Of a stretch of 64,000 bases of DNA, positions 44,357-63,685 are shown piece after piece. How positions within the stretch are numbered: the stretch's first letter is position 1; each line of letters begins with the position of its first letter. The translations under genes and the position numbers were made by a program. The DNA lies in sequence record NC_048047.1. One strand, given 5' to 3'. The notes under the pieces were generated by a model. The model had not been told where the DNA came from and searched no databases. It was given only the letters and a program-made list of their open reading frames with translations.

Positions 44357-44657
44357 CTGACCCATTTTAGGGTTAATGTCGCGCCCTAACCCGATTTTGG
44401 GCGACACCCAGGCGAACGGGCGCCGGCCGGGTCGTGATCCCCGGCCGGTGGGTCAGTGGAGCAGCCAGAGCAGAAACGCCAGCGCCGCCAGTGACCAGCC
44501 GTTCAGCAATTTCAGGGTGGGCGCCTCTCTCGTCTGCCGTGGCCGCTCGCCACCCCTCATTCATCGCATACAAGAAAACTGTTGCCAAGCCCCAAAGATC
44601 GCTTGACAGCATAAAAGCCCAATGCGACAAGAGGCCATCCAAACGGGAGACACCCCA

Positions 44658-45230
44658 ATGACCGAGCAAACCCTAGACCTTCTCTATCCGGCCCTGATGC
44701 TGGAGCAGAAGATTCCCCACCGCGAAGGCATGTTGCGGCTGGCCATCGTCCTGCGCGACTTTGGCCCCAAGGCGCCCCATCGCTACGTCACCCACCTGCG
44801 GATCGAAAACCCCGTACCGGGCTCGGAACACGCCTTCACCTACAGCTATGACCACGGCACCTATTCGGCCGACCTGCGCCGCGCCACCACGGTCTATTTC
44901 GAGCGCGTCGCCGAGCGGGTCATGACCGCCATGGTCGCCCTTCACGACCTGCCCGAAGTCGCCCCGCCCCCGCCGACCGTCACCATGCCGCTCGAACTGG
45001 CCCAGACCGCCTATGGCCTGATCGATGACAACGAACTGGACCTGTCCAAGGCCTGCGGCAACGTCACCTTGGTCGAGGCCGCCATTACCGGGCTGGCGGG
45101 CGTCCTGGGCTCGCTCAAATACTTCCGCGACGTCGAGGAAGGCAACGCCAAGCTTCTGGAGGCCTATGAAGCCGCCCAGGCCGCCCGTGACGCCGCCCTG
45201 GAGGCCGAATCCGAGGCCGAAGAGGCCTAA
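44658..45230 (+). CDS. cassette hypothetical protein
   Basis: promoter 44603, GGGAGACACC RBS. Confidence 0.75.
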   Translation: MTEQTLDLLYPALMLEQKIPHREGMLRLAIVLRDFGPKAPHRYVTHLRIENPVPGSEHAFTYSYDHGTYSADLRRATTVYFERVAERVMTAMVALHDLPEVAPPPPTVTMPLELAQTAYGLIDDNELDLSKACGNVTLVEAAITGLAGVLGSLKYFRDVEEGNAKLLEAYEAAQAARDAALEAESEAEEA

Positions 45231-45374
45231 AAGGACGCGCCCAGGCCTCCCCGGCCTGGGCGTTGCCCATTCACCAGGCGTTAAGGTTAACCGCGAAATT
45301 AGTGCGAGAAATCTGTTGACACGCATTGAGGCCCTATGCGAGAACAAAGCTCCACTTCATGAGGAGCGCCAAGC

Positions 45375-46031
45375 ATGGCCCTGCCCGATCGCCTCTTTGT
45401 TTCCACCGACGGCGCGCTTTACGACACGGCCGCAGAGGACTGGAGCCGCCGCGCGCCCGTGCGCCGCCGCTACAATATCCTGACCAGCGAGGTCACCGAT
45501 ATGCAGGACGTCAAGGCCGCCCTGCGCCATGGCCCCTACGCCTTCCCCGGCGGCTATCCGCACTATTTCGTCACCCGCGACGGCGTGGCCCTGTCCTTCG
45601 ACAGCGTGCGCAAGATGCTCTATCAGGTCGCGGACGATTTTCAGCATGACGCCTCGACCGGCTGGCGCATCGCCGCCATCGTCCCCAATTTCGAAGACGA
45701 CGATCTCGTCTGCGACCACAGCGGCGAGAAAATCCCCTCGGCCTATGGCGCGGGCGATGAGTCGCAAGACGATGACGCCCCCATGGCCTGGGCGGTCGGC
45801 GCCAACGTCTCGGGCTTCATGCCCGACAGCGAGCCGGTGCATTATGCCGATTGGACCGACGCGCGGCGCGGCCTGATCGACCTAATCGGACAAGCCCGCG
45901 AGGCCTACGAGGAAGACTCCGCCGAGGACGCAGCTTTCCAGACCATGCTGGACGCCTTGCGCGCCGTGCCCGATGAGGCTGAGTTCAATTGGGGCGCGGT
46001 CGGCTATCGCTGGTGGCTTGAGCGCCTGTAA
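45375..46031 (+). CDS. cassette hypothetical protein (acidic)
   Basis: promoter 45316, GAGGAG RBS; YAFPGGYPHYF. Confidence 0.8.
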   Translation: MALPDRLFVSTDGALYDTAAEDWSRRAPVRRRYNILTSEVTDMQDVKAALRHGPYAFPGGYPHYFVTRDGVALSFDSVRKMLYQVADDFQHDASTGWRIAAIVPNFEDDDLVCDHSGEKIPSAYGAGDESQDDDAPMAWAVGANVSGFMPDSEPVHYADWTDARRGLIDLIGQAREAYEEDSAEDAAFQTMLDALRAVPDEAEFNWGAVGYRWWLERL

Positions 46032-46183
46032 CCGCGAGCCCAGGCCTTCGCGCCTGGGCTTTGCCCCGCCCCCTGGGCGTTAAGGTTACCCGCGAAAATA
46101 GTGCAAGAAACCTGTTGACTCGCTTTGCCGCCCATGCGAGAACAGGGCTCAGACGAAACGACGAGACCACAAAGGAGGCCGCC

Positions 46184-46192
46184 ATGAAGTAG
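46184..46192 (+). other. two-codon minigene ATG-AAG-TAG
   Basis: AAGGAGG at 46172-46178 directly upstream. Confidence 0.45.
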
Positions 46193-46213
46193 CGACAATC
46201 TGGAGCACATCTC

Positions 46214-46687
46214 ATGGAAATCTACGTTGGCCTGCGTGACGATCTGGTTCAGGTCGGGACTCATTGGGAGGACGGGGAACCGGAGTTTGCCCGTGTCATC
46301 ACGGTCTATCTCCAGGCGCCTGACGGCTCCCGGATCATCCACGATTACCGGTTCACCACGCGCGGCCCCCAAACCCAGGATGGGGATGGGATGCCATGTT
46401 GGCCACAACTCGATATCGAGGCTGTCGTCACCGAGGCGCAAGCCTTCCGCGACAAGGTGGAAGCCCATCTCAAGGCTGGTGGCCGCATCAAGCGCGAGCA
46501 TTGGCGCGAGATCGATCCGGCCTACGGGTCCAGGGCCTATGCCGATCTCGACCAGTTCGGCTATTGGCGCGCCATCGAACGTCAAGGCTGGCGCGACCAT
46601 GGCGAGAACGTTCCGCCCGATCAGTGGGACGCCATCGCCGGTTTTGCCGAACCCAACGGCTGGCCCTTGCCAGACCTCTTTGCCTGA
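46214..46687 (+). CDS. cassette hypothetical protein
   Basis: GGAG RBS, terminator after the stop. Confidence 0.75.
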   Translation: MEIYVGLRDDLVQVGTHWEDGEPEFARVITVYLQAPDGSRIIHDYRFTTRGPQTQDGDGMPCWPQLDIEAVVTEAQAFRDKVEAHLKAGGRIKREHWREIDPAYGSRAYADLDQFGYWRAIERQGWRDHGENVPPDQWDAIAGFAEPNGWPLPDLFA

Positions 46688-46873
46688 TCCCAAGGCCCGC
46701 CTCCCCGGCGGGCCTTTTCTTGACCACCGCCTGGGGTTAACCTTAACGTCGCCTTAAGGTTAACCCGCCCAGGCCGGCGCCCAGGCGAAAAAGATTGCGA
46801 GAAACCTGTTGACACGCATGGAAGCCCTATGCGAGAACAGGGCACCAATTCAACGCCAGCCGGGAGACACCCC

Positions 46874-47455
46874 ATGGCCCTTGTCACCGAGTCCTTTGTC
46901 GTCGATATCGACTGCACCCGCGCCCTGACTGCCGCCGAGCGGCGAGGACTGGCCGGCGCCATCGCCCAGGTCCTGGGCGTCAATATTGATCGTGTCGAGC
47001 CCGAACCGGGCGGTTTCCTGACCGCCAATATCGGCCGCGTGCGCCCGGCCGGCATGGTCGGCGCCTCAGGTCAAGAGGCTCGGATCAAGACCGAGGCCCT
47101 GACCAGCCGCGACCATGACGCGCCCGTCGCCCTGACCCTGGAGGCTGGCGAGCGCGTCGATGTCATCGCCCGCTTCTACTGCATGGCCGATGCTGAGACC
47201 TATCTGAACGAAAACCCCGACATCGACCCGGTGTCGCTGAACCTGGGCTGCTATGGCATTGACGCGCCGTTTGGCGTGGCCAGCGACGCGGACGGCGACA
47301 AGCTCCTCTATGAGCTGGGCTATCGCCTGCACGCCACGGGCGGCGGGTCGTGGTCCTTCACCGATCCGAAGGGCTATCTCTGGGACGGCGGCGGCAAGCG
47401 TGAGGCCGTGGTCATGATCGCCCTGAAACAAGCCGCCGACGCCGAGGAGGCCTAA
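46874..47455 (+). CDS. cassette hypothetical protein
   Basis: promoter 46809, GGGAGACACC RBS. Confidence 0.75.
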   Translation: MALVTESFVVDIDCTRALTAAERRGLAGAIAQVLGVNIDRVEPEPGGFLTANIGRVRPAGMVGASGQEARIKTEALTSRDHDAPVALTLEAGERVDVIARFYCMADAETYLNENPDIDPVSLNLGCYGIDAPFGVASDADGDKLLYELGYRLHATGGGSWSFTDPKGYLWDGGGKREAVVMIALKQAADAEEA

Positions 47456-47459
47456 GACC

Positions 47460-47876
47460 ATGACCGGTTACACGATCAAGCTCGAAGTTCAGGTCAACCC
47501 GGCTGACAGCCTGGAGCAGGCGCGCAAGGACGTCGAGACCGCCATTATCAAGGCCGATCTTCCGGCCTGGATGGAATGGATGATCATCGACGCCGCGCCC
47601 CTGGCGCCGGTGATCGCGCCGGCCACGCGCTGGGCGACCTTCGTCGGTCAGGCCTGGATCAACGGCCACACGATGGAAGTGGACGACAGCCGCGTGAGCT
47701 ACGGTGTCACTGACGAGGAGTTTGACGAAAACGGCGGGGACGAGCCGGCCGACTTCGACGCCCTGGCCCAGGCCGCCCGCGCTCCCGACTGGGTGCGCAA
47801 CTGGTCAGGCCCCTTCGACATCTACATCTCGGACATTCCAGACGGGCAGGACCCGGATATTCCGGTTTTCGGCTAA
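47460..47876 (+). CDS. cassette hypothetical protein (acidic)
   Basis: GAGGAGG RBS. Confidence 0.75.
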   Translation: MTGYTIKLEVQVNPADSLEQARKDVETAIIKADLPAWMEWMIIDAAPLAPVIAPATRWATFVGQAWINGHTMEVDDSRVSYGVTDEEFDENGGDEPADFDALAQAARAPDWVRNWSGPFDIYISDIPDGQDPDIPVFG

Positions 47877-47945
47877 GGGTGCAAGAAAGCTGTTGACAGC
47901 ATAACAGCCCTATGCGAGAAAGGGTCATAGCAAGGAGACACCGCT

Positions 47946-48176
47946 ATGACCCCCAACCCGACCGAAGAGGGCAAGGCCGCCGCCCGCCAATGGCTGGCCA
48001 ACTCGACCAGCGAATGGGCGCCCGAGCCCAAGAACCCCTATCGCACCCTGGCCCGGTCGATGACCGCCCGCACCGACGAGGAACGCCGCTGGGACGCGGG
48101 CTATCAGCACATCCTCGACCTGGAATTCCCCGACGACGGCGCCGAGCAGCGCGCCGAACGCGCCTTTGGCTGCTAG
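47946..48176 (+). CDS. cassette hypothetical protein
   Basis: promoter 47893, AAGGAGA RBS. Confidence 0.75.
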   Translation: MTPNPTEEGKAAARQWLANSTSEWAPEPKNPYRTLARSMTARTDEERRWDAGYQHILDLEFPDDGAEQRAERAFGC

Positions 48177-48329
48177 AGAGGTCCGCCGGCTCACCCCGGC
48201 GGACTTTCCACCACCGCCCGGCGTTAACCTTAACGCCGCCTTAAGGTTACCCGCGAAAATAGTGCAAGAAAGCTGTTGACAGCATAGAGGCCCTATGCGA
48301 GAAAGGCTCATCGAAACGGGAGACACCCC

Positions 48330-48839
48330 ATGGACGACACCTATCCGCCCCTGACCCCCGGCCAGCAGGACGCCCTGGTCGCCTTCGCTGACCAGCATGG
48401 CGGCCTGGGCGAGGCCTGGAAGGAAGCCCTCGGCGACGCCTGGAGGACGTGCAGCGAGCCCGAGGCGCTCAAGGCCGACCTGCGGACCATCCGCAACACC
48501 TATGGCCCCTCCTGGCTCTATGATGAATACGCCTGGGGCTGGCGCCCGACCCTGCCGGCCTGGGAGCGCGCCGGGCGCTGGACCGACACCCCGCCCGAGC
48601 CGACGCCGGGCAAGGCCCGCTGGAGCGCCGCCTTCGACCCGCCGGCCATCGGCGAGCGCGTCCGGGTGACCACCAACGGCCTGGGCTGGGCCAAGGTCAC
48701 CGGCTACTTCGTCGAAGGCGACTGGCTGGGCGTGATCGTCAAGCTGGAGGCCCCGGCCGACTGGTATGTCAAACAGAACGGCGGCAACGTCCCCGGCCAC
48801 AGCTTCGGGACCGAGATCGCCCTGACCGACCCCGCGTGA
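48330..48839 (+). CDS. cassette hypothetical protein (two modules, C-terminal SH3-like)
   Basis: promoter 48276; LRTIRNTYGPSWL; PAIGERVRV. Confidence 0.75.
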   Translation: MDDTYPPLTPGQQDALVAFADQHGGLGEAWKEALGDAWRTCSEPEALKADLRTIRNTYGPSWLYDEYAWGWRPTLPAWERAGRWTDTPPEPTPGKARWSAAFDPPAIGERVRVTTNGLGWAKVTGYFVEGDWLGVIVKLEAPADWYVKQNGGNVPGHSFGTEIALTDPA

Positions 48840-49020
48840 CCTGGGCGGCCCTGGCTGGGAGACCAGCCGGGGCGACGCCTTGGCCGGCGCGGTTAACCTT
48901 AAGGCCGCGTTAAGGTTAACCGCCCGCGCCCTCCGCCCGGCGAAAGAAAATGCAAGAAAGCTGTTGACACGCATCCGAGACCTATGCGAGAAAGGCGCAT
49001 CGAACAACGGAGGCCCTTCC

Positions 49021-49863
49021 ATGGCCAAGCTTTTCAGCGATCTCCAAGACCTTGCCACCTCGACCTATGTCGTGCGCATCGTCGACAATGGCGGCGAGAG
49101 CGCCGACCGTTACACGATCGTCACCGCCGATGGCGACTATTACGCCTACAGCGCCAATCCCTCCCATCCCCAAGGCGTGGGCCTGAGCGGCGAGGGCATC
49201 GACCCGCAAGTTCTGGCCGACTGGGTAGAGCGCGGGCAGGCCATCGACCTGACCATCGGCGAACTACCCGAGGGCGCCGCCCGCTGCCTGCTGGCGTCGA
49301 TCAACGCCAGCGTCGAGGACTTCCTGGCCGCTGTCCTGGACCCGACGTCCAACGCCGTGGCCCCGACCCGCGAAAAGGCGGAGATCAACGAGGGCGTCAT
49401 GGATTGCTTCGGCAAGGGCATCTATCGTGTCGGCGAGGGTTTCGCCGTGCGTATGGATGGCATGGACGCGGGCGATGATCGCGGACCGTTCATGACCGCT
49501 GTCGATGCGGTCAAGGCCACCCTCCCCGATGAATACGCCTGGGCGGGCGAGGAATACCTGTCGCCGCGCGACATGACCAAGGTCACGCCCGAAGCCAAGC
49601 CGCTCGTCTTGGTTCACGCCCTGGAGGCCATTCGCGACTATGAATATCAGCGCGACACACCCGGCGCGTTTTTCGACGGCCTGCACAAGGACGACACTGA
49701 CGCGGGCCTGGGCATCGTGCGCCGCACGCGCTACCTGTCCAAGGTCACCGGTGATGCGACCATCGTCGGGCTGATCGGCGAGGCGCCGGCTTTCGCCCTG
49801 GCCCATGCGTGCCTCGACCAACTGTGGACCCTGGCGCAAGAGCGTTGGGAGGCGGGCCAGTGA
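49021..49863 (+). CDS. cassette hypothetical protein
   Basis: promoter 48964; DNGGESADRYTIV, NPSHPQGVG. Confidence 0.8.
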   Translation: MAKLFSDLQDLATSTYVVRIVDNGGESADRYTIVTADGDYYAYSANPSHPQGVGLSGEGIDPQVLADWVERGQAIDLTIGELPEGAARCLLASINASVEDFLAAVLDPTSNAVAPTREKAEINEGVMDCFGKGIYRVGEGFAVRMDGMDAGDDRGPFMTAVDAVKATLPDEYAWAGEEYLSPRDMTKVTPEAKPLVLVHALEAIRDYEYQRDTPGAFFDGLHKDDTDAGLGIVRRTRYLSKVTGDATIVGLIGEAPAFALAHACLDQLWTLAQERWEAGQ

Positions 49864-50099
49864 GCGCCCGCGAACGCCGCGCCCTCGCCGAACTGCTGGC
49901 CCTCTTCCATGCCGTCAATAGCGGCCATGTCAAGGGCCGCAACCCCTACGCCTTCCCGGCCGTCAAGCTCGCCAACGCGGCGTTGACGGGCGATCCGCTG
50001 GACGGGGGATTCCACGTCGCCGAAGCGCTGGACACCCTGCGCACGTCCGATGGCAAGGCGCTGCTATTCGACACCGAATTTCCCGAAGAAAGCGGTTGA
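49860..50099 (+). CDS. cassette hypothetical protein
   Basis: GTGA coupling; stop lies in the next -35 box. Confidence 0.65.
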   Translation: MSARERRALAELLALFHAVNSGHVKGRNPYAFPAVKLANAALTGDPLDGGFHVAEALDTLRTSDGKALLFDTEFPEESG

Positions 50100-50150
50100 C
50101 AGCATAAGGGGCCTATGCGAGAAAGGGTCATCAACGGAGACACCCCGCCC

Positions 50151-50291
50151 ATGTGGACCGACAAGACGTTCAAGACCCGGACCGCCAAGGAGGCCTGGAT
50201 CGCCCGCAACGAAGACCGCTATCAGATCGTCGAGATCGTGGTCTGCAACGCTTACGGCGTGTCCTACAAGCCCCTGCGACGCGTCTACTAG
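50151..50291 (+). CDS. 46-aa cassette protein
   Basis: promoter 50096, GGAGACACC RBS; translated by hand. Confidence 0.65.
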   Translation: MWTDKTFKTRTAKEAWIARNEDRYQIVEIVVCNAYGVSYKPLRRVY

Positions 50292-50302
50292 GAGACCCGC
50301 CC

Positions 50303-50494
50303 ATGATCCCCGACTCGGTCCGCAACCCCAAGGACCACTGGACCCCCATCGCCACCCGCGCCGAGGCGGACGCCCTGGCCTTCCGCTACAACCAAGACGA
50401 CGACGGCCCCGGCCTCTACGAGGTCCACGAAAAGGGCGCGACCTTCGCCATCGCCTACTATGACGAAGACGGCGTGTTCTGCGCCTACGTCTAG
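50303..50494 (+). CDS. cassette hypothetical protein
   Basis: AGGAGA RBS, terminator after. Confidence 0.7.
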   Translation: MIPDSVRNPKDHWTPIATRAEADALAFRYNQDDDGPGLYEVHEKGATFAIAYYDEDGVFCAYV

Positions 50495-50683
50495 CCGTCA
50501 CCTCGTCACCTTGAAGGCCGGCGCCGCTCTCCTGGCGCCGGCCTTTTCTTTGCGCCCGGCCGCCCGGTTAATCTTAAGGCGGCGTTAAGGTTAACCCGCC
50601 GCATCCCGCCCTGATGCAAAAAACCTGTTGACACGCATGGAAGCCCTATGCGAGAAAGACGACGAACACGGGAGACACCCCTT

Positions 50684-51688
50684 ATGACCACCGCCACCAT
50701 CGCCGGCGCCGAACACACGATGATCGGACAAGCCGCCTACCGCTCCACCCAGCGCCCGCATCAAGTGCAGGACATGGCCTATGGCGCGTTCCCGGCCGCC
50801 ACGTCGGACTCGCCCTTCGCCGTCAAGCCTGCCTGCGGCAAGACCCCGAGCGCGCGCGTGCTGGAGGACTTCGACCCCGCCGACGTCTTCACCATCAAGC
50901 CGCGTGATCGCGGCGACGGCTTCCTTGCGGTCGCCAACTTCGGCGGCTCTGAGGTGTCGTGGATCAGCGTCGCCGGCTATGGCGACACCGAAGACGCCGC
51001 GCGCGCCAACCTCATGGCCAAGTTCATCGACGATCGCGACGGCAAGAGCAAGTTTGGCCCCCATGAGCCGCTCAAGGGCTATGACTGGTCCTATAAGCTG
51101 GCGCCCTATTGGGACATGCTGGAGCGCGAGGCCGCCATTCGCCAGCCCTTCAAGCGCACGCTCTACCTGGGCAAGCTGAAGTCGGGCCGCCCCAATCCCA
51201 AGGGCTTTGACGTGTTCGTCGATGTCGAATGGACCGGCGAGCGCCTGAGTCTGTCGGGCGTCATCGGCCCCAAGGCCAATGGCAACGCCTGGGGCGGCTG
51301 TGGTCAGATCGTCGGCAGTCTTGCGCGCAAGGACTTTCTGGAGTTCGCCCCGTCCTGGCATTATGGCTCGGCCCTTGACGGTCTGGTCAAGGCCTGGACC
51401 CGCTGGCACCTGAACGACATGCGCGCCGGCACGCCTCGCCAGCAAGAACACCTGCGAGGCTATCAGGCCAAGCGCAACATTGAGCAGGCCAAGGCCGCCG
51501 GCGCCCACCATCTCGACGCCACCCGCGCCGAACTGGCGCGCGTCCATCTGGAGCCCGACACCTGGGAGCGCCGCAACGGCCGGCCCTATAGCTACGGCTC
51601 CGCATGGTTGCGCGAGGAGGTCCCCACCTTCGTTCTCGACTTCCTGCGCAATCTCCCCGCCCCCGTCAAAACCAGCCCCTGGAGGTAA
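50684..51688 (+). CDS. cassette hypothetical protein
   Basis: promoter 50628; WTRWHLNDMRAGT, YSYGSAWLREEVP. Confidence 0.8.
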   Translation: MTTATIAGAEHTMIGQAAYRSTQRPHQVQDMAYGAFPAATSDSPFAVKPACGKTPSARVLEDFDPADVFTIKPRDRGDGFLAVANFGGSEVSWISVAGYGDTEDAARANLMAKFIDDRDGKSKFGPHEPLKGYDWSYKLAPYWDMLEREAAIRQPFKRTLYLGKLKSGRPNPKGFDVFVDVEWTGERLSLSGVIGPKANGNAWGGCGQIVGSLARKDFLEFAPSWHYGSALDGLVKAWTRWHLNDMRAGTPRQQEHLRGYQAKRNIEQAKAAGAHHLDATRAELARVHLEPDTWERRNGRPYSYGSAWLREEVPTFVLDFLRNLPAPVKTSPWR

Positions 51689-51695
51689 CCCGCCC

Positions 51696-52130
51696 ATGGC
51701 CATCAACACCGCCGGCCTCGTCGGCAAGCTCAAGGAAGCCCTGGCCAGCGCGCCGAACCTGACCCTTTGGGCCAAGGAACGCGGCCTCTTCCACCAGAAC
51801 GTTTCGGCCGCCGCGCGCGGCGACACCGTGCCGCAAGACAGCATCGCCAAGGCCCTGGGCTATCGGCGCGTCCACGTCCAAGCCTATCTGGCGCCCGGCG
51901 AGGCCCTGCCGCTTCTGCCGCCCGGCTGGGAGGAAGTGGTTCCGGGCTCGGCGACCCCGGTCGACTGGAAGCCGCGCGACAAGACCGCCGAGCCGGCTCA
52001 TCGCCGCGTTGGCTCGCCTGAGCAAATGGCGCGCGCCCGCTCGCTTCGCCGGCAGGAAGACCCCGAGGCCGTGGCGGCGGTGCAGGAAGCCCTTGCCGAC
52101 GCCAAGGCCAAGCTGCGAAAAACCGGTTGA
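51696..52130 (+). CDS. Cro/XRE-like HTH protein
   Basis: GGAGG RBS; LTLWAKERGLFHQNVSAAARGDTVPQDSIAKALGY. Confidence 0.6.
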   Translation: MAINTAGLVGKLKEALASAPNLTLWAKERGLFHQNVSAAARGDTVPQDSIAKALGYRRVHVQAYLAPGEALPLLPPGWEEVVPGSATPVDWKPRDKTAEPAHRRVGSPEQMARARSLRRQEDPEAVAAVQEALADAKAKLRKTG

Positions 52131-52181
52131 CAGCATAAGGCGGCTATGCGAGAAAGGCTCATCACTTTCTGGAGCAAGCCC

Positions 52182-52391
52182 ATGGCCGCCTTCCTGATCA
52201 ACACCGATCTCAACGCCCTGGTCGAGGACATCGCCTATGACGTCGAGATGGAAGACCGCGCCGCCGAGGAACTCGATGGCATGGACTTTGGCGACCGCTG
52301 CTATTACGGCGACCGCGCCTATCATGGCCAGCTTGAGCTTGCCCGGATCATCGAAGCGGCCACCGCCGCCCATCCCATCCTGTACGCCTAG
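52182..52391 (+). CDS. cassette acidic hypothetical protein
   Basis: promoter 52127. Confidence 0.7.
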   Translation: MAAFLINTDLNALVEDIAYDVEMEDRAAEELDGMDFGDRCYYGDRAYHGQLELARIIEAATAAHPILYA

Positions 52392-52406
52392 CAGAGGAGG
52401 CGCCGC

Positions 52407-55444: not shown

Positions 55445-55636
55445 ATGGGTCTCAAGATCGAAATCGACACCGGCAACGACGCCTTTCAGGGTGTGGCCGG
55501 CGAGCACTGCGCCAGCCTCCTGCATGAGGTGGCCCGCAAGCTCGACCAAGGCGCCCGCGCCGGCAATATCTACGACGGCAACGGCAACAAGGTCGGGACC
55601 TACGAACTCGACCACACCGACGCCCCGGAGTCGTAA
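55445..55636 (+). CDS. cassette conserved phage protein
   Basis: promoter 55389; KIEIDTGNDAF...YDGNGNKVG. Confidence 0.75.
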   Translation: MGLKIEIDTGNDAFQGVAGEHCASLLHEVARKLDQGARAGNIYDGNGNKVGTYELDHTDAPES

Positions 55637-55639
55637 GCC

Positions 55640-55963
55640 ATGGCCTATTTCGACGTCATCACCACGGTGCGCGTTGAGGTCGAGGACATCCCCGATCTCT
55701 TCGCCGCCGCCCTGGCGCGCGCGGTCAAGGACGGCATGGAAGAGGGCGACGCCCGCGACCTGCTGACCAACTCCGACCCCCTGGGCCGCCCCGACATCAA
55801 GTCGTGCCTGATCATGCTGTTTGATCCGGGCGTGAGCCCGGACGGCACGTCGATCAGCGGCACGGAAGTCCAGCGCCCCGACATGGACGAAGACGACGCC
55901 ATGGACGCCTACGAGGACGCCCACGGCGAAGACGAGGAAGGCGACGGCGATGACGAGGACTAA
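55640..55963 (+). CDS. cassette acidic protein
   Basis: D/E-rich tail. Confidence 0.7.
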   Translation: MAYFDVITTVRVEVEDIPDLFAAALARAVKDGMEEGDARDLLTNSDPLGRPDIKSCLIMLFDPGVSPDGTSISGTEVQRPDMDEDDAMDAYEDAHGEDEEGDGDDED

Positions 55964-56300
55964 GGGCAAGTCGCGCGTTCCCCAACGCCTGCTGATCGCC
56001 AGTCGGCCGACCCTGGTCGCCGGCCCCTCGCCAGCCACCCGCCGCCACTGGTGGGACCTTCTGGACAGCGCGGGCCACCCGCGCGACCTTGAGGCCCTGC
56101 TGGTCGTCACCATCGACCAAGACGCGGCCGAAACCGTCGTCGCGGTCCTGCCGCTCGCCGCCGCCGACTACAGCGAAGAAGCCGTCAAGGCTGACGCCCT
56201 GGTCGCCGCCCACACCCGCCCCCGCAGCCCTGGCAAGCGCGACGCGCTCAACGCCTATGTGCTGCATGTCAATGACCCCCATGCGGAGCATCAACCGTGA
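55950..56300 (+). CDS. cassette hypothetical protein
   Basis: overlap coupling. Confidence 0.6.
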   Translation: MTRTKGKSRVPQRLLIASRPTLVAGPSPATRRHWWDLLDSAGHPRDLEALLVVTIDQDAAETVVAVLPLAAADYSEEAVKADALVAAHTRPRSPGKRDALNAYVLHVNDPHAEHQP

Positions 56301-56755
56301 GCTATTCCGGCCCGATCACCATTTCGCAAGGCCTGCGCTGGCGCCTCGATAGCTACGGCAACGGCGCGGCCTATGCCTTCTATGACCTGTCGGCCGGCGC
56401 CAGCGTCTGGCTTGAAGGCGACGACGCCACCACGTTCCGCGACGACTACGACAACGCCGAAAAGCGCCGGCCGCAAGACGAGCCTGACGAGATTATGGGC
56501 CATCTGTGGCATGATCACGAATACGGCGCCGCCGCCAAGGTCCGGGCCGTCACCGTGCGCCGGATCATCCGCGAAGACACCGTGATCCTGTTGCGCCCCG
56601 GCGAGAGCGAGGCCGACGCCAAGGAACGGGCGATCTTCAATCAATCCTCGCTCAAGTGGGACACCTACGATTGCGAGTATAGCGCCGACGCCGCCGAGGA
56701 CGCCCCCGCCGAGGAATACGCCTATCTGCTGACCGGCCACCCCTGCGCCATCTAA
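56297..56755 (+). CDS. cassette acidic hypothetical protein
   Basis: GTGA coupling; YGNGAAY, VWLEGDDA. Confidence 0.7.
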   Translation: MSYSGPITISQGLRWRLDSYGNGAAYAFYDLSAGASVWLEGDDATTFRDDYDNAEKRRPQDEPDEIMGHLWHDHEYGAAAKVRAVTVRRIIREDTVILLRPGESEADAKERAIFNQSSLKWDTYDCEYSADAAEDAPAEEYAYLLTGHPCAI

Positions 56756-56898
56756 GCCAAGGCCCGCCCCTCCCTTCAGGCAAGGAAGGCGGCGGGCCTT
56801 GCCCTGGGCGATCGCGGTTAACCTTAACGTGCAAGAAATCTGTTGACACGCATTGAGGCCATATGCGAGAAAGGACCACCGCAACGGGAGAGACCCCC

Positions 56899-57207
56899 AT
56901 GACTGCCCAAGCCGTTCTGACCGCCCGCCTTGACCGCGCCGTCGCCGTGATCTCTGGCGACATCCCCAAGAGCCGGCGCAAGGTGCGCAAGGCCCGCCGC
57001 GCCTTCCAGCGCGCCCTGGAAGGGATGGACATCCCGACCTATGTGGCGTGGATCAACCACCCCGACTCGTTCATCGCCCTCACCGACGATGTCGAGCACT
57101 GGGCGCAAAGCGGGATCACCACCGCCGCCCAACTGGGCGCCTATCTCGACGGCTGCGCCCGCCATGAGGCCCGCAAGGACTTGATGAGCGGCTACCTCGA
57201 CGACTAG
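56899..57207 (+). CDS. cassette hypothetical protein
   Basis: promoter 56843. Confidence 0.7.
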   Translation: MTAQAVLTARLDRAVAVISGDIPKSRRKVRKARRAFQRALEGMDIPTYVAWINHPDSFIALTDDVEHWAQSGITTAAQLGAYLDGCARHEARKDLMSGYLDD

Positions 57208-57301
57208 GCGGCAAAAAGGCCCGTCCCCTGGTGGGGCGGGCCTTGTCCTGTCCGATCGGGATTAACCTTAACGCGAGATTAAGGTTAACGCAGCCTTAAG
57301 G

Positions 57302-57544
57302 TTAAGTGGCGTTCTTGCGCGTCGTGGCCTGGGGATTGGCCTTCAACCATGCGTCGGCTTCCGTCCGGGTCGAGAACGGCGCCCCGCCAATGCCCTGCGT
57401 CCCGTCGTCCCATTGGATGGTCCAACCCACGTTCTTGATTTCCCAATCTTCGGCCACGCCGTGGGGGATCGGGGCGTGTACGCCAATACGGGTAAACGGC
57501 GCCCGCTTCAGTTGACGGACACGCGCCGGGATCACTTGCGGCAT
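57302..57544 (-). CDS. inverted cassette hypothetical protein
   Basis: AGGA RBS on minus strand; own leftward promoter; WTIQWDDG...FSTRTEADAWL. Confidence 0.65.
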   Translation of the reverse strand: MPQVIPARVRQLKRAPFTRIGVHAPIPHGVAEDWEIKNVGWTIQWDDGTQGIGGAPFSTRTEADAWLKANPQATTRKNAT

Positions 57545-57597
57545 TTCAGGGATTTCCTATTGACAAAGGCCTTGCCCCATGGGCGGCCCGAAAGGCG

Positions 57598-57625
57598 ACT
57601 GTATCAAGCGGCGCCGCCGTGTCAA
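57598..57625 (-). promoter_or_regulatory. leftward promoter
   Basis: TTGACA-N16-TACAGT on the minus strand. Confidence 0.6.
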
Positions 57626-57725
57626 GAAACGCGACACAGACTGAGAAAGCGGTTGACACGCATCTAAGCCCTATGCGAGAAAGATCAGGCACGGCGCACC
57701 CCCGCGCCCCTGGGAGACACCCCGC

Positions 57726-58496
57726 ATGGACCTGACCACGTTTTCGGCCTCGGCTGAATTTGTTCTCTGCAACAAGCCGGTGAAGATCACCGTCAAGCCC
57801 GCCGGCCGACCGCTCTACCTGTCGTTTTCCATCGAACAGATCGGCATGATCGGCGGTAGCGACGAATTGATGAGCGAGGCCGAACAACACGACGTTGAGG
57901 ACTTGGTGACGGTCTTGACCATCGCCGACGTCCTGTCCCTCAAGCCCATCGAGACCTATAACGACGAAGACCGCGACGCCGTCGAGAGCGTGCGCTATGC
58001 GCTGATCATGCTCAACGGCGAGCGCTACGCTTCGGCCGTCGCGTTCGAGGATGTCGGCGAGGCCGATTTTTCCAATCGCGACGACACCATTGACACCCGC
58101 CAAATCGTCGAGCGGGTCGAGGTGCTTCGGAGCGCCCTGGAGACGGCCGGCGTCGAGACCGGCGACCTCGCCGCCCTGGAAGCCCTCGACGAAGAAGAGG
58201 CCGTGACGGACCAAGACCAGCGCGAGACCTTCAACGAGATTCGCGAGGAATATCTGATCCTGGCGCGCATGGTCGAGGAGGGCGCCAACTACGGCGAGGA
58301 TTGGACGTTCGGCGCCACCCTGGTCCGCGAATCCTACTTCACCGAGTTCGCGCAAGAAGAGTGCGAAAGCCTGGGCTACATCGCCAAGGACTTCCCGTCG
58401 TGGATTTCCATCGACTGGGAAAAGACCGCCAACACGATGAAATCCGACTATACCGAAATCGACTTTGACGGCGTGAGCTACTACGTTCGCGCCTAG
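57726..58496 (+). CDS. ArdA-like antirestriction (DNA-mimic) protein
   Basis: very acidic; C-terminal ESYFTEFAQEECESLGYI...PSWISIDWEKTA...DYTEIDFDG. Confidence 0.55.
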   Translation: MDLTTFSASAEFVLCNKPVKITVKPAGRPLYLSFSIEQIGMIGGSDELMSEAEQHDVEDLVTVLTIADVLSLKPIETYNDEDRDAVESVRYALIMLNGERYASAVAFEDVGEADFSNRDDTIDTRQIVERVEVLRSALETAGVETGDLAALEALDEEEAVTDQDQRETFNEIREEYLILARMVEEGANYGEDWTFGATLVRESYFTEFAQEECESLGYIAKDFPSWISIDWEKTANTMKSDYTEIDFDGVSYYVRA

Positions 58497-58559
58497 GTGA
58501 AGCTCCTCGAAGGCGGCGGCCTGCTCGCGCTCTGCTTCCTCTTCTGGTTGCTTCATTAA
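58497..58559 (+). CDS. 20-aa hydrophobic peptide (copy 2)
   Basis: GTG directly after the upstream TAG; terminator after. Confidence 0.75.
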   Translation: MKLLEGGGLLALCFLFWLLH

Positions 58560-58656
58560 CCCCGGCCGGCGTCCATGACCTGGGCGCCGGCCTTTTCTTT
58601 GCGCCGCGATCGGGGTTAACCTTAAGGCGGCGTTAAGGTTAACGGCGGGCCTGGGA

Positions 58657-58752
58657 GGAAAGGCGTCAAGGCCGCGAGCTAGGATTACACGCGATGGCTT
58701 AGCCGGCGTCCAGCCGGCGGCGCCTTCGACCACCGCGAGGCGGCCTTGACCC
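58657..58752 (-). ncRNA. candidate ~95-nt structured small RNA
   Basis: minus-strand TTGACA-N15-GCGAGAT promoter (58785-58758); 11-bp closing stem 58665-75/58740-50; nested stems; no evident ORF. Confidence 0.45.
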
Positions 58753-58871
58753 TCGTAATCTCGCCGACCCGTCGCCCGGTGTCAACCGTTTTCTTTCTCC
58801 AAGAATTCTGTTGACACGCATCGAAGCCCTATGCGAGAAAGGGTCATCTTCAACGCCTGGAAAGAAAATCC

Positions 58872-59528
58872 ATGCCCCGCACCGTCACCAAACAGGTCTT
58901 CACGTTCAAGGAGTTGAACGACAAGGCCAAGGCCAAGGCTATCGAGTGGTATCGCGGCCTCAACGACCAAGACTCCGGTTGGTGGGAGTTCGTCTATGAC
59001 GAAGCCGACCGCATCGCCGACGCCTTCGGGATCACCCTGCGCCGCAAGGAAGCCGGCAAGCCCAATAGCGGCCCGGACATCATGTTCACCGGCTTCTGGA
59101 GTCAAGGCGACGGCGCCTGTTTCCAAGGTCGCTACGAGTCGCCCCAAACCCCGGCCGTCGAAGCCTTCGCCGCCCTGGGAATCGAAGACGACACGCTCAA
59201 GGCTCTGGCCGCCCGTCTGGACGCTCTGAGCGCCAAGGTTCGCCTGATCACCACGGTCAAGCACTCTGGCCACTACTACCACGAGTATTGCACCGACTTC
59301 GAAACCGAACGCATGGTTCCCGACGAAGCCGGCGACGCCTTCGACCCTTACGACTTCGAGCACGAAGACGAAAAGGAACTGATCGACATTCTGCGCACCT
59401 TCATGAAGTGGATTTATCGCCAGCTTGAAGTCGTCGAGGAAGACCGCAATTCCGACGAAACGATCAGCGAATATCTGACCGACTCTGATTACGAGTTCGA
59501 GGCGGACGGCTCGCCGACCAACGACTAA
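58872..59528 (+). CDS. conserved acidic protein (FWSQGDG family)
   Basis: promoter 58811; VFTFKELNDKAKAKAIEWYR, FTGFWSQGDGACF. Confidence 0.75.
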   Translation: MPRTVTKQVFTFKELNDKAKAKAIEWYRGLNDQDSGWWEFVYDEADRIADAFGITLRRKEAGKPNSGPDIMFTGFWSQGDGACFQGRYESPQTPAVEAFAALGIEDDTLKALAARLDALSAKVRLITTVKHSGHYYHEYCTDFETERMVPDEAGDAFDPYDFEHEDEKELIDILRTFMKWIYRQLEVVEEDRNSDETISEYLTDSDYEFEADGSPTND

Positions 59529-59700
59529 GCCAAGCCCGCCGCGCCCGGCCTTTTCGCCGGGCGCGTGTCGGGTTTTGGTTTTCCAAGGTCTTGTTAAGGT
59601 TAACGAAAAAAGCCCTCCAGCGACCTGAGAAACTGCAAGAAAAATGTTGACTGCATCCAAGCCCTATGCGAGAAAGGCTCATCGCAACGGGAGACACCCC

Positions 59701-59988
59701 ATGACGACCCCGACCAAGAAGCGCCGCAAGCGCTACCCGCCCAAGAGCGACGCGGCTAAGGCTCGCGCCGCCGCCAAGAGCAAGGCGTTCTTCGCCAAGC
59801 ACGCGCTCAAGGCCACCGAGGCCACGATCGCCGCCATGAAGGCCGGCGACCAAAAGGCCGTCCAACGCCACGCCAAGGACGCCCGGCGCCTGAACCGCTG
59901 GATGATCCACAAGCGCGACATCGCCGCCGCCTTCGCGGCCCTTTTCGACCTGCGCGCCGCGCGCCTCGCCCTGGAGCTTGCCGCATGA
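59701..59988 (+). CDS. cassette basic protein
   Basis: promoter 59647; K/R/A-rich. Confidence 0.7.
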   Translation: MTTPTKKRRKRYPPKSDAAKARAAAKSKAFFAKHALKATEATIAAMKAGDQKAVQRHAKDARRLNRWMIHKRDIAAAFAALFDLRAARLALELAA

Positions 59989-60200
59989 CCCGTCGCCCTG
60001 CCTATCTGACCGTCCTGGGCGGTATCGGCCTCATCCTCGCCAGCCTCGCGCTTTCGGCCGCCAGCGCCCCGGAAAAGCGGGTTCTCGTGGGTCAATACTG
60101 CGACGGCGACCTTGTGCGCCTCTACGGCCTGGAAGACGGCGAGGAAGCGGCCGAGGCCTGCGCCATCGTCGAAGTCCACGCCCTGCCCAAGGGCCTTTGA
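59985..60200 (+). CDS. small exported or membrane protein
   Basis: ATGA coupling; signal-like N-terminus. Confidence 0.65.
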   Translation: MTRRPAYLTVLGGIGLILASLALSAASAPEKRVLVGQYCDGDLVRLYGLEDGEEAAEACAIVEVHALPKGL

Positions 60201-60202
60201 CC

Positions 60203-60541
60203 ATGGAACGCCTCAACGTTCACGTGCTGACCATCACCTATGACAGCGGCAACCCCGTCCCGCCGTTTGTCGCTCTGGCCATGTCCAAGGAGGAGCTTGA
60301 CGACAACCTGCAAGCCAAGGCGCGCGAGGAAGTCGAAAACCTCTATTTCGAGGAAGACGACCTCTTTGACGACCTCGCCAAGGTCCTGACCGCCGAACGC
60401 GTCGCCGAGCTTCAGCCCCTGGGCCTGGACGCCATCGGCCTCCTGACCCCGGTCGAAGTCGTCACCATGGCCAAGCAATTTGCGTCGATCACGCCAAGCT
60501 TTGACGTGCTTCCGCTCTACCTCGAATCGACCCCGACCTGA
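60203..60541 (+). CDS. cassette acidic hypothetical protein
   Basis: ORF in cassette. Confidence 0.7.
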   Translation: MERLNVHVLTITYDSGNPVPPFVALAMSKEELDDNLQAKAREEVENLYFEEDDLFDDLAKVLTAERVAELQPLGLDAIGLLTPVEVVTMAKQFASITPSFDVLPLYLESTPT

Positions 60542-60621
60542 CGCAAGAAAGCTGTTGACAGCATAATTCGCCTATGCGAGAAATGACTGTCAACGGCGAT
60601 TCCCGCCGCATGGAGACACCC

Positions 60622-60966
60622 ATGAAGCTGATCAAACACGACGTTCTCGACCACGGCCGCGCCTCGACCCTGCGCAACGCCCTGGGCACGGCCCTGGAAC
60701 GATACGCCGAAATCGCCAAGGACTTCGAAGGCTACGCCATCGAATACGCGGCCCTGGACGAGGCGGGCAAGCAAGCCTGGAAGGCCACCAATAGCTGGAT
60801 CAATCCGCGCGCCCTGCCGGACCTGAAAAAGCAATTCGAGCGCCAAGTCACCGAGGTGCAAGACCTCATCGACTGGCTGGACGGCGACAAATTCCAAGAC
60901 GAAAACGGTCAATACCCGGAAAACACCGAGTTCACCGTCGTCGCCGGCCTGATCCGCGACTTCTAA
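60622..60966 (+). CDS. cassette hypothetical protein
   Basis: promoter 60555, GGAGACACC RBS. Confidence 0.75.
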   Translation: MKLIKHDVLDHGRASTLRNALGTALERYAEIAKDFEGYAIEYAALDEAGKQAWKATNSWINPRALPDLKKQFERQVTEVQDLIDWLDGDKFQDENGQYPENTEFTVVAGLIRDF

Positions 60967-61161
60967 ACGCCCTGGCCAAGGCCCGCCCTCACGGCGGGCC
61001 TTTTCCTTGACCCCGCGCCGCTGTTAACCTTAACGTGCAAACGTTCGCCGATTAACCTTAACGAGACATGTCCGTTCCGTTAACCCTGTCGTGCAAAAAA
61101 GCTGTTGACTCGCATCCAAGCCCTATGCGAGAAAAGGCCATCAGCAACGGGAATGACCCCC

Positions 61162-61572
61162 ATGACCAAACCCGAAATGACCCCGGAAGAACGTCGAGCC
61201 CAGCTTGACGACATGCTCAAAATCTGGCGCGAGCGCGTCGAGACCGCCAAGCAACGCCTGTCGATCAACGTCCTGGTCGGCCGAGGCTTCCTCTGCGTCC
61301 TGGAGCGCGAGCCCAGCGGCATGGCCATCGGCCCGACCGAGGATGACAAGGGCTGGCGCCTTGTGGCCATGAACCCCTGGTTCACCGGCTGCGTCAAATG
61401 GGCCAAGGCCGACGCCGAACAAGTCGCCGCGCACTGGAACGCCAACCTCACCGGCGACGCGGCCCTCTACTGCGTGGTCAAGGTCATGCACTATCGCGCC
61501 GTCCTCGAAGAGATGGTCACCAAAGGCGAGGAGATGATCGCCTTCATGGAAGACCGCTATAAGGCCGCCTGA
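61162..61572 (+). CDS. cassette hypothetical protein
   Basis: promoter 61105; alternative start at 61153. Confidence 0.7.
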   Translation: MTKPEMTPEERRAQLDDMLKIWRERVETAKQRLSINVLVGRGFLCVLEREPSGMAIGPTEDDKGWRLVAMNPWFTGCVKWAKADAEQVAAHWNANLTGDAALYCVVKVMHYRAVLEEMVTKGEEMIAFMEDRYKAA

Positions 61573-61760
61573 TCTTGACGCCCTCCGGCTCCGGCCGGAG
61601 GGTTAATTTTTGGTCGACCCGGCGTCAAGGTTAACGCGCTCCAGCCTGGGGTTAACCTTAACCCGCAACCGTTTGCACGTTAACCATTTGGCGCAAGAAA
61701 CCTGTTGACACGCATTTCTGTCCTATGCGAAAAGAGGCCATCCAATCAACGGAGGCCCGC

Positions 61761-62417
61761 ATGGCCAGCCCTGAAGATATCGCCATCGTCCAAGCCGCGC
61801 CGGTCAGTTTCGACCTCGAAGCGTGGGAGGAAGAAAACGGCCAATATGCCCAAGACCACTGGCGCCACCTCAACTACGCCTTTGAGATCAAGGGCTATAA
61901 GCACATGTTCACGCAAGATCAGCGCGCCGCCGCCGATCGCCTGATCGCCGAATATGAGGAAGCCCAAGACGACCACCGCGAAACCTACCGCGCCGAAAGC
62001 GACGCCGTTTTCTGGGCGGCCGACGCCTTCGCTCGCCAGTACATCGGCACGGCGCTCTGGACGGGCGTTAGCTACCCCATGGGCGATGATCGCGGCGGAA
62101 GCGACAGCTACTATGACGGCGAATCGGCCTGGATCACGCCCAAGACCCTGCGCGAGATGATCGAAGATTGCGACGCCTTCCAGCGCGACAACGTCGCCGC
62201 CCTGGCCAAGGCCTATGCGTCTGACGTCTGGATCGAAGGCGAGCGCTACAACGCCAGCAACGCCGGTCACGATTTTTGGTTGACCCGCAACGGTCACGGC
62301 GTCGGCTTTTGGGATCGTGGCCTAGGCGAGGTCGGCGAGACCCTTTCCGAAGCCGCCCGCAAGGTCGGAGAATACAGCCTAGCCCTTGACGACAACGGCG
62401 AAATCAGCCGCATGTAA
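61761..62417 (+). CDS. conserved phage protein (GHDFWLTRNGHG family)
   Basis: promoter 61705; AGHDFWLTRNGHGVGFWDR. Confidence 0.8.
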   Translation: MASPEDIAIVQAAPVSFDLEAWEEENGQYAQDHWRHLNYAFEIKGYKHMFTQDQRAAADRLIAEYEEAQDDHRETYRAESDAVFWAADAFARQYIGTALWTGVSYPMGDDRGGSDSYYDGESAWITPKTLREMIEDCDAFQRDNVAALAKAYASDVWIEGERYNASNAGHDFWLTRNGHGVGFWDRGLGEVGETLSEAARKVGEYSLALDDNGEISRM

Positions 62418-62579
62418 CCCCGGCAAAGGCCCGCTTGACAGCGGGCCTTTTTCGTGCCTGCGCCTGGGGTTAACCTTAACGCCACCCCGCTCCGCCTTAA
62501 CGCTCTTTTCTGCAAGAAAACAGTTGACTCGCATCCGCGCCCCATGCGAGAAAAGGTCATCAACCACGGAGCGCGGCAC

Positions 62580-62954
62580 ATGGCCAAGCAAGAACAACTT
62601 GAAATCGCCCTGGTCCTGCTGGACGAGCACAAGGCCAAGATCGGCGCCCCTCGCGCCTTCACCTACGGCGAAGTCATCGAGGCGTACCGCGACGCGGGCG
62701 CCCTGATCAGCGCCGAGGTCCGCTTGCAGCGGATCGCCGAAAACGAGTGCAACGGCTACCGCGACGAGACGGCCGAAAAGCTCGATGAGCGCCGCCGTCA
62801 GACCCTCGAAGCCAAGGCCGGCGAAATCGCCAAGCGCTACGGCGTGGCCCTGACGTTCGGCGGCGACCCGCGCGGATCGGCCCTCAAGATCAAGACCCCG
62901 CACACGGGCCGTTACAACGGCTTTGGCGGGCGTGAGGATGGATGGGCCGTCTAG
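62580..62954 (+). CDS. conserved phage protein (GDPRG family)
   Basis: promoter 62524; LQRIAENECNG, FGGDPRG. Confidence 0.75.
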   Translation: MAKQEQLEIALVLLDEHKAKIGAPRAFTYGEVIEAYRDAGALISAEVRLQRIAENECNGYRDETAEKLDERRRQTLEAKAGEIAKRYGVALTFGGDPRGSALKIKTPHTGRYNGFGGREDGWAV

Positions 62955-63021
62955 GCCCATTCTGACCCCTTCCACCCCTGTAGCGCGTCCCCTCTCAACC
63001 CCTGGCCCTAGGAGACACCCC

Positions 63022-63192
63022 ATGGCCCGCACGACCATCCACACCCGCACCGACAAGGCCAATCGCGAGGCGCTGACCCCGTGGGAATATGAGCGCCAGC
63101 ACCGCGCCGACAAGAAAGCCGCCAAGTCCTGGCGCACCGATCGCCAAGGCCGCCGCGCCCTGGCCTCTTCGGACGCCTTCAAGGCCCACTAA
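63022..63192 (+). CDS. small basic protein
   Basis: AGGAGACACC RBS. Confidence 0.65.
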   Translation: MARTTIHTRTDKANREALTPWEYERQHRADKKAAKSWRTDRQGRRALASSDAFKAH

Positions 63193-63286
63193 ATCGGCCT
63201 CGAAAAAAGTTCGGCTCGATGCGAGAAACCTGTTGACTCGCATCGAGCCCCTATGCCATAAAGGGTCATCAAACGGAGACACCGAC

Positions 63287-63451
63287 ATGACCCACTTCCA
63301 ACGCGCCACCGAAGACCAAGTCACCGTCGCCCACCACACCGTTTCGGGCGGTGAACTGACCGTCACCACCCGCCCCCTGGCCCGCCCGGTCTACCGCCTG
63401 AACGGCTTCAAGATCAGCGCCGCCGACGCCGCCCGCAAGCTGGCCGCCTAA
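63287..63451 (+). CDS. cassette small protein
   Basis: promoter 63233, terminator after. Confidence 0.65.
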   Translation: MTHFQRATEDQVTVAHHTVSGGELTVTTRPLARPVYRLNGFKISAADAARKLAA

Positions 63452-63685
63452 GACCCCTCCCCTAGAAGGCCCCCTCCCTGGAGCGGGGCCTTTTTCGTGG
63501 CCGTTAGGCAGGCGTTAGGGTTAACCGGTAGGGTGAATTCGTTAACCTTAATGGGGCGTTAAGGTTAACCCAGCCAGCCCAGGCTGTTAACCATGTAGGC
63601 GAAGAAAGTGCGATCTCGTGTAAGAAAGCTGTTGACTGCATAAGAGCCATATGCGACAAAGGGTCATCAGCAACGGAGCTACCCG

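Follow-up and report, generated by a model that had tools for sequence, protein, structure and literature searches.

The stretch of DNA analysed here (the window) comprises 64,000 nt of sequence record NC_048047.1 and corresponds to positions 258273..322272 of that record; all coordinates below are positions within the window. A megablast search assigned 44000..64000 to Caulobacter phage CcrBL9 (NC_048047.1, 100% identity), a member of the genus Bertelyvirus, subfamily Dolichocephalovirinae, with a genome of 322,272 bp. The window is the right end of this genome: the large terminase gene lies at 39344..42157 (record 297616..300429), and 41741..64000 is the right copy of a 22,260-bp direct terminal repeat annotated in the CcrBL9 record. 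Within the repeat we found an array of 23 elements which, on the basis of their -35 hexamers, spacing, extended -10 and position in front of genes, we predict to be promoters of the host RNA polymerase (sigma-73). They serve 38 annotated genes in units of one to four, and nearly all of them carry the same inverted repeat, GCAT-N9-ATGC (hereafter the dyad), between the -35 and the -10. An earlier, sequence-only reading of this DNA had proposed that the dyad is the operator of one dimeric regulator acting on the whole array, for example in a shut-off of first-injected genes. Because the array is located inside the direct terminal repeat, both copies of which are identical, it is present twice per genome. 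The predicted array promoters (numbered; coordinates run from -35 to -10) and the features that belong to them are as follows.

44603..44631, plus strand: array promoter 1, 17-bp spacer; dyad 44609..44625; start codon 26 nt downstream
45316..45345, plus strand: array promoter 2, 18-bp spacer; dyad 45323..45339
46115..46143, plus strand: array promoter 3, deviant, GCTT-N8-ATGC; its CcrSC orthologue has an exact dyad
46809..46838, plus strand: array promoter 4; dyad 46816..46832
47893..47921, plus strand: array promoter 5; dyad 47899..47915
48276..48304, plus strand: array promoter 6; dyad 48282..48298
48964..48993, plus strand: array promoter 7; dyad 48971..48987
50096..50124, plus strand: array promoter 8; dyad 50102..50118
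50601..50617, plus strand: extra dyad, not in a spacer, 34 bp upstream of dyad 50635, with an ATGC that forms the beginning of a UP-like box
50628..50657, plus strand: array promoter 9; dyad 50635..50651; predicted to drive 50684..51688 and the putative helix-turn-helix (HTH) gene 51696..52130
51696..52130, plus strand: gp016, 144 aa, putative Cro/YdaS-like N-terminal HTH from structure and profile searches; leading candidate binder
52127..52155, plus strand: array promoter 10; dyad 52133..52149
52724..52753, plus strand: array promoter 11; dyad 52731..52747
54916..54944, plus strand: array promoter 12; dyad 54922..54938
55389..55417, plus strand: array promoter 13; dyad 55395..55411
56843..56872, plus strand: array promoter 14; dyad 56850..56866
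57653..57682, plus strand: array promoter 15; dyad 57660..57676
58811..58840, plus strand: array promoter 16; dyad 58818..58834
59647..59675, plus strand: array promoter 17; dyad 59653..59669
60555..60583, plus strand: array promoter 18; dyad 60561..60577
61105..61134, plus strand: array promoter 19; dyad 61112..61128
61705..61734, plus strand: array promoter 20; dyad 61712..61728
62524..62553, plus strand: array promoter 21; dyad 62531..62547; the inverted repeat reaches 7 bp
63233..63262, plus strand: array promoter 22, -10 CATAAA; dyad 63240..63256
63632..63660, plus strand: array promoter 23; dyad 63638..63654

A search for GCATNNNNNNNNNATGC (GCAT-N9-ATGC) returned 24 exact matches in the window, compared to 1.13 on average and never more than 4 in shuffled sequences. 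As many as 22 of them directly followed TTGAC(A/T) or TTGAC(A/T)C, in the range 44609..63654, and the other two, at 43339 and 50601, were outside any promoter spacer. The feature is real and highly non-random, and these counts and placements bear out the earlier statement that 22 of the 23 array promoters contain the dyad. The deviation of the promoter at 46115, which is otherwise of the same build, was also as described, and so were the two spacing classes, 15 and 16 bp to the 8-mer GCGAGAAA, equal to 17 and 18 bp to GAGAAA in the hexamer convention. The same holds for the promoters reported to lack the dyad or to miss it narrowly, all of which lie outside the repeat:

22057..22085, plus strand: sister promoter TTGACG-N14-TGC-GAGAAA, without GCAT, G at -16
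23631..23659, plus strand: sister promoter without GCAT, G at -16
28052..28080, plus strand: sister promoter with the near-dyad GCCT-N9-ATGC, one base off
3658 and 10183: promoters with a host-like -10 (CTAGAT), without the dyad

The whole CcrBL9 genome contained 53 dyads, 24 in each repeat copy, one in a further dyad promoter 77 bp beyond the left repeat (outside the window), and only four scattered over the rest of the genome, which is about the number expected by chance. The promoter class TTGAC-N14-16-TGn-GAnAAn had 26 members in the unit genome, all of them in the repeat or in the 20 kb preceding it. With one array promoter as the query, blastn matched the 11 Bertelyvirus records and nothing else, and three other phages of this host, phiCbK, Colossus and PW, had no such promoter array in their repeats. 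An IMG/VR search with the large terminase (TerL) returned only BL9, SC and relatives at ≤52% identity, a loose form of the dyad pattern gave nothing beyond chance matches in IMG/VR, and no Rfam family matched the terminal repeat. According to these searches, the dyad array is confined to Bertelyvirus and its uncultured relatives.

On aligning the copies, we found a conserved block of about 50 bp, which is longer than a plain promoter. From its 5ʹ side, it consists of (T/C)GC(A/G)AGAAA at -48..-40, CTG-TTGACA at -38..-30 and GCAT at -29..-26, and then, towards the 3ʹ side, of four free bases, G(C)CC(T/C), ATGC at -16..-13 and GA(G/C)AA(A/G) at -12..-7. Downstream of the -10 there is a G-rich (GGG) discriminator and tCAtC, followed by a GGAG Shine-Dalgarno sequence and the start codon, which in 18 of the 23 cases is 24-31 nt after the -10 hexamer. 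The dyad is 17 bp long and spans -29 to -13. All 23 promoters have TTGACA or TTGACT as the -35, in line with a sigma-73 -35, and their spacers of 17 or 18 bp and their orientation (plus strand, like the genes) are likewise those of sigma-73 promoters. The TG of an extended -10 was found at -15/-14 in each of 79 distinct promoters that we took from four Bertelyvirus genomes (BL9, SC, BL47 and RB23). The published sigma-73 consensus of C. crescentus is TTGaCg / GCtANAWC; GCGAGAAA matches five of the seven specified positions of its -10 part and is without T at -12 and without T or C at -7. An E. coli-type promoter scanner, which demands T at -7, called none of the 23 array promoters, and the E. 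coli-type pattern TTGACA-N17-TATAAT gave no match. A sigma-32-like or short-spacer promoter with CTATGC as the -10 was ruled out by the spacing on reading the sequence.

Two side observations concern the anatomy of these promoters. The A-rich -48..-40 box (T/C)GC(A/G)AGAAA resembles a proximal upstream (UP) element, yet as a 9-mer it is almost identical to the -10 box TGCGAGAAA. Further copies occur at 10170, 27602 and 28039, and the box also precedes promoters with a host-like -10; it may be a plain UP element or a second recognition site. The gene behind promoter 61105 (61105..61213) has its annotated start at a distance of 78 nt from the -10; since an in-frame-looking ATG with a Shine-Dalgarno sequence is located at 26 nt, as is usual in the array, the annotation may place the start too far downstream.

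Among the 79 promoters, each position of GCAT was kept in 76-79 and all four positions of ATGC in 79, while the inner positions carried 0.1-0.4 bits at -25..-22 and 0.6-1.3 bits at -21..-17. The spacer was of 17 bp in 37 promoters and of 18 bp in 42; the extra base (C, A or G) was always placed between the -35 and GCAT and never between the arms, the distance between which was constant. In 13 orthologous promoter pairs of BL9 and SC, we found no substitution in the eight arm positions, in comparison to 22 in eight positions between the arms. The arms were also kept in three uncultured relatives represented by Logan contigs. In L232, five of seven dyads were exact and two had GCAC; L205 had one dyad, and L237, where the neighbouring protein was only 54% identical, had one complete promoter and another cut by the contig end. 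What these contigs had lost was the inner GCCC block and T-17. Inverted half-sites at a fixed spacing, with arms conserved and a free centre across diverged genomes, are properties of a palindromic operator; independence of promoter context is another, and for this we found only the suggestive extra dyads at 50601 and 43339. Judged by these alignments, the conservation has the pattern of a two-armed protein site, for which neither descent alone nor the shape of the DNA easily accounts.

We also considered a hairpin or cruciform, including an N4-type hairpin promoter. Complementarity of the inner positions was observed 30, 25, 15 and 27 times against 23.5, 23.7, 16.3 and 26.5 expected, i.e. without excess, and the fold z-scores of promoter copies were inconsistent, from +0.2 to -2.4, with some copies at about -2; the hairpin is therefore not the conserved thing, and this candidate was rejected. 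In BL47 (L003 25300..30000), we noticed about five tandem copies of a unit of ~884 bp with two dyad promoters and three small genes, which indicates that the array grows by recent duplication.

To find a protein that might read the dyad, about 40 open reading frames of the terminal repeat were compared with Pfam, and none had a significant domain. The sequence-only reading had pointed to a Cro/XRE-like HTH at 51696..52130 (gp016) and this assignment held in part: structure and profile searches gave the protein a Cro/YdaS-type look, whereas Pfam and PHROGs made no HTH call. The AlphaFold (AF2) model of gp016 has a four-helix N-terminus, at a low confidence (predicted local distance difference test score, pLDDT, of 59). 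Almost all of its top 50 Foldseek matches were XRE/Cro domains (HipB, 434 Cro, SinR, C.Esp1396I), with non-significant E-values of 0.3-4, and in the ESM Atlas residues 1-66 adjoin HTH_3 clusters at template modelling (TM) scores of 0.6-0.8. An exhaustive profile search reached about 20 small proteins via the N-terminal 60 residues; of ten matches that were scanned, P0142 passed the YdaS and HTH_3 cut-offs and P0139 came close to them. These three lines of evidence, weak to moderate, suggest a Cro/YdaS-like HTH in gp016. Its putative recognition helix (H33-A38, R41, G42) is invariant in all four full-length homologues, and the three close homologues besides gp016 itself are all in dyad-bearing phages. 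The gene is the second one behind dyad promoter 50628, which alone has a second dyad (50601), kept in CcrSC.

We regard gp016 as the most likely binder, with the standing of a candidate only. The other HTH protein that had been put forward, at 23353..23634 (HTH_23, 25.2 bits), is a poor candidate, because the BL47/RB23 group has the dyad but lacks this protein; it was seen in BL9 and, as a fusion to a larger protein, in SC only. It is encoded together with an RNA ligase (Pfam RNA_ligase, 3.8e-28) in the region 22095..23634, which the dyad-less promoter 22057 is predicted to drive. The annotated XRE regulator gp491 was rejected as a dedicated binder, as it is a core gene of the subfamily, present also in phages without the dyad.

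The reading that we tentatively prefer is that the array consists of strong sigma-73 promoters sharing an operator, which is read by a dimeric phage HTH protein, likely gp016, that turns the array down as a whole. The narrower statement that the dyad is a shared operator for one regulator we consider probable. In such a scheme, the host sigma-73 polymerase would transcribe short units of one to four ORFan genes from 23 strong promoters, with starts at the CA about 20 nt before the start codon. A phage-encoded HTH dimer would bind the 17-bp operator GCAT-N9-ATGC at -29 to -13, the right half-site of which coincides with the TG on which promoters with a weak -10 should depend. Since the occupied operator would cover the TG needed by the weak hexamer, it would exclude RNA polymerase and should act in repression. 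As gp016 would itself be transcribed from a dyad promoter, a repressor made from the array would result in negative feedback or in an early shut-off of the whole repeat.

Several observations weigh against this proposal. On the side of the protein, gp016 had no Pfam match at E ≤ 0.05, no PHROG match and no PDB sequence match, and both the confidence of its model and the significance of its structural matches were low. The dyad at 50601 is absent in BL47 and RB23, and the BL47 homologue of gp016 has its frame broken by a 1-nt deletion in a C run relative to RB23 (L003 11915..12075 vs L004 12600..12760), which may be real or an assembly error, while BL47 keeps more than 30 dyads. On the side of the DNA, the arms are short, 4 bp, reaching 5-7 bp in some promoters with an 18-bp spacer; there is no enrichment of dyads away from promoters; and between the arms, the conservation in the four isolates is one-sided, present on the right (GCCC(T/C)) and missing on the left, which a symmetric site does not predict. 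Finally, three of the four ATGC bases can, on sequence comparison, be accounted for by RNA polymerase alone. The TG is the extended -10, the GC is part of the Caulobacter -10 consensus, and TGC is retained in the sister promoters without GCAT. A metagenome scan in which the left arm was left free returned only unrelated TTGAC-N15-ATGC-GATAAT promoters, from genomes of 40-57% G+C, none of them with GCAT. The right arm therefore cannot count as separate evidence of an operator. The proposal of one dimeric regulator stands insofar as the arms, together with their spacing, show the behaviour of a protein site in the 79 promoters, in the relatives and in the BL9/SC pairs, and loses the right arm as a separate argument.

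The points on the DNA side, namely the polymerase elements in the right arm, the retention of TGC in sister and unrelated promoters, the asymmetric inner conservation and the lack of dyads elsewhere, favour a rather unlikely but serious alternative, in which the -48..-40 box, GCAT and the rest of the block up to +2 are contacted only by the host polymerase (sigma-73, the C-terminal domain of the alpha subunit, the spacer) or tune the shape of the DNA, the symmetry being coincidental. What this explanation leaves aside is the left arm. We know of no base-specific polymerase contact at -29..-26 of sigma-70 promoters, and to our knowledge neither A-16 nor the constant distance between the arms has a role for RNA polymerase. 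GCAT is locked to the -10 side and not to the adjoining -35 hexamer, the host consensus has nothing at its position, and promoters of the same class exist without it. Two of these, 22057 and 23631, which lack GCAT wholly, keep TGC-GAGAA and have G instead of the A that stands at -16 in 79 of the 79 promoters. That two invariant tetramers are exact reverse complements of each other would happen by chance with a probability of about 1/256 per register.

It is quite improbable, in our view, that the operator is read by a host Caulobacter regulator, which would tie the terminal-repeat genes to a physiological signal of the host. This idea draws on CtrA. For phiCbK-like phages, CcrBL9 and CcrSC among them, an enrichment of CtrA sites in the terminal repeats has been published and connected with lytic deferment via host CtrA, so that phages of this subfamily apparently already recruit one host regulator to the region. 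The window contained ten TTAA-N7-TTAA boxes (the form of a CtrA site) against 0.02 expected, all in the repeat:

44048, 46743, 48230, 48899, 50574, 55300, 57268, 57285, 58622, 63548: CtrA-form boxes, mostly 45-90 bp upstream of array promoters

By this pattern count, the boxes agree with the published enrichment and represent a second layer of control, which was absent from the sequence-only reading. The dyad itself was rejected as a CtrA box: its sequence differs from the TTAA-N7-TTAA direct repeat, and the CtrA-form boxes are located upstream of the promoters. The published XRE protein TgrL of phiCbK, which regulates host genes early on, has targets in common with XRE paralogues of the host, and this also speaks for a host regulator. 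Against it, we found no Caulobacter regulator with this motif in the literature and the motif string in no paper, and the array is limited to one phage genus, being absent from phiCbK, Colossus and PW on the same host.

We give a similarly small chance to the possibility that the dyad docks an activator or a phage-modified transcription apparatus (sigma-appropriation-like or virion-delivered) needed for the weak GAGAAA -10. The lack of T at -12 and -7, the failure of the E. coli-type scanner on all 23 promoters, the length of the conserved block and the occurrence of the 9-mer TGC(A/G)AGAAA twice per promoter would fit such a role. However, the host polymerase should need no more than the near-consensus -35, the UP-like tract, the extended -10 and the GGG discriminator, and the CcrBL9 genome has no gene annotated as a sigma factor or an RNA polymerase. 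A dimer centred at -21 would, moreover, sit where repressors typically do, overlapping the contact made by the extended -10. A MerR-type spacer operator was rejected, as MerR-like activators need the dyad in a spacer of 19-20 bp, compared to 17-18 bp here. That the dyad has no function and owes its identity to recent duplication or gene conversion, or to selection for a hairpin or cruciform, is hardly tenable: the promoters are clearly paralogous, BL47 has fresh tandem duplications of two of them and some copies fold at the z-scores given above, but next to the arms the sequence varies freely, both inside one genome and from one genome to another, the arms persist beside a protein as diverged as that in L237, and the fold and complementarity data do not favour a hairpin, so that the conservation pattern largely refutes it.

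Repression by gp016 could be extended to the life cycle of the phage. Members of the Dolichocephalovirinae have been published as episomal pseudolysogens. If gp016 and one 17-bp operator in about 24 promoters per repeat (48 per genome) formed a single-input switch layered on host CtrA control, this could underlie early shut-off or the reported episomal persistence and lytic deferment; we consider this extension unlikely. None of the papers searched, those on CtrA, TgrL and the pseudolysogens included, described the promoter array or the dyad. The giant phiCbK-like phages are standard Caulobacter tools with hundreds of ORFan genes. A shared operator, if true, would offer a simple handle on the timing of this gene programme, in the form of a single protein and a single 17-bp site with about 24 targets in each repeat. 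The array promoter would in turn be a compact, modular and probably strong Caulobacter promoter, which, if repressible, could serve as a genetic part.

Other elements were noted in the repeat. A gene-poor stretch, 42900..44600, contains tandem arrays of 23 bp x3.7 at 42928, of 27 bp x3.7 at 43832 (of the TTGACG...CCATTTCGCC type) and of 10 bp x5.9 at 44263, as well as a GGTTAAC/TTAAGG cluster at 44091-44193. In the repeats of phiCbK, Colossus and PW, similar TTGACGC arrays are located at ~1.5 kb from the left end, and Logan contig L236 contains such arrays as well; the tandem arrays are possibly an origin or a packaging signal. The same stretch holds the stand-alone dyad GCATGGGTCCACAATGC at 43339..43355, which lies outside any promoter and is conserved in CcrSC with one inner change. 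The product of gp032 (58872..59528) belongs to a widespread family (130 matches, phrog_5162), one member of which is labelled antitoxin by one source and distant members of which adjoin ArdC-like genes in other mobile elements. Homologues of gp032 at ≤51% identity were located in unrelated elements.

Among known systems, the closest in kind are the operators of lambdoid phages (OR and OL of lambda, 434 and P22), which, like the dyad, are 14-18 bp long, have conserved outer arms and a variable centre, and lie over the -35/-10 region of early promoters. They are read by a small dimer of the Cro/XRE fold, and Cro turns early transcription down; here the binder is a candidate. A lambdoid phage has two such promoters, each with three operators in tandem, whereas CcrBL9 would have about 24 promoters per repeat with one operator each; it is, moreover, a virulent or pseudolysogenic phage of 322 kb, and the arms are only 4-5 bp. 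The stoperators of Cluster A mycobacteriophages (the L5 gp71 sites) resemble the dyad in their some 20-30 copies of one site over a phage genome, in a single orientation with respect to transcription and in genome-wide control by one protein. Unlike the dyad, they are asymmetric sites of 13 bp, bound by a monomer, which lie between genes and not in promoter spacers and block elongation.

The termini of phiCbK were likened to those of T5 in the original phiCbK paper. CcrBL9 shares with the T5 pre-early region a long non-permuted terminal repeat and small ORFan genes behind strong host-type promoters. A dyad common to the pre-early promoters of T5 is not known to us; the annotated A1-like gene of CcrBL9 is outside the repeat and without Pfam support, and phages of the CcrBL9 group are not known to inject their DNA in two steps. 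The CtrA boxes resemble the dyad in being in the same region, with one regulator for many terminal-repeat promoters, and differ in being direct repeats, in their position upstream of and not in the spacer, in using a host factor and in occurring in all genera, whereas the dyad belongs to Bertelyvirus and uncultured relatives. Extended -10 (TGn) promoters have TG exactly at -15/-14 before a weak hexamer, as the array does, and the same form is seen in unrelated metagenomic promoters; it explains the right arm only, and not GCAT, A-16 or the fixed spacing of the arms. The known kind to which the dyad would belong is the repressor operator in phage early promoters, and what is unusual is that a single operator is multiplied over about 24 terminal-repeat promoters, with one half shared with the extended -10.

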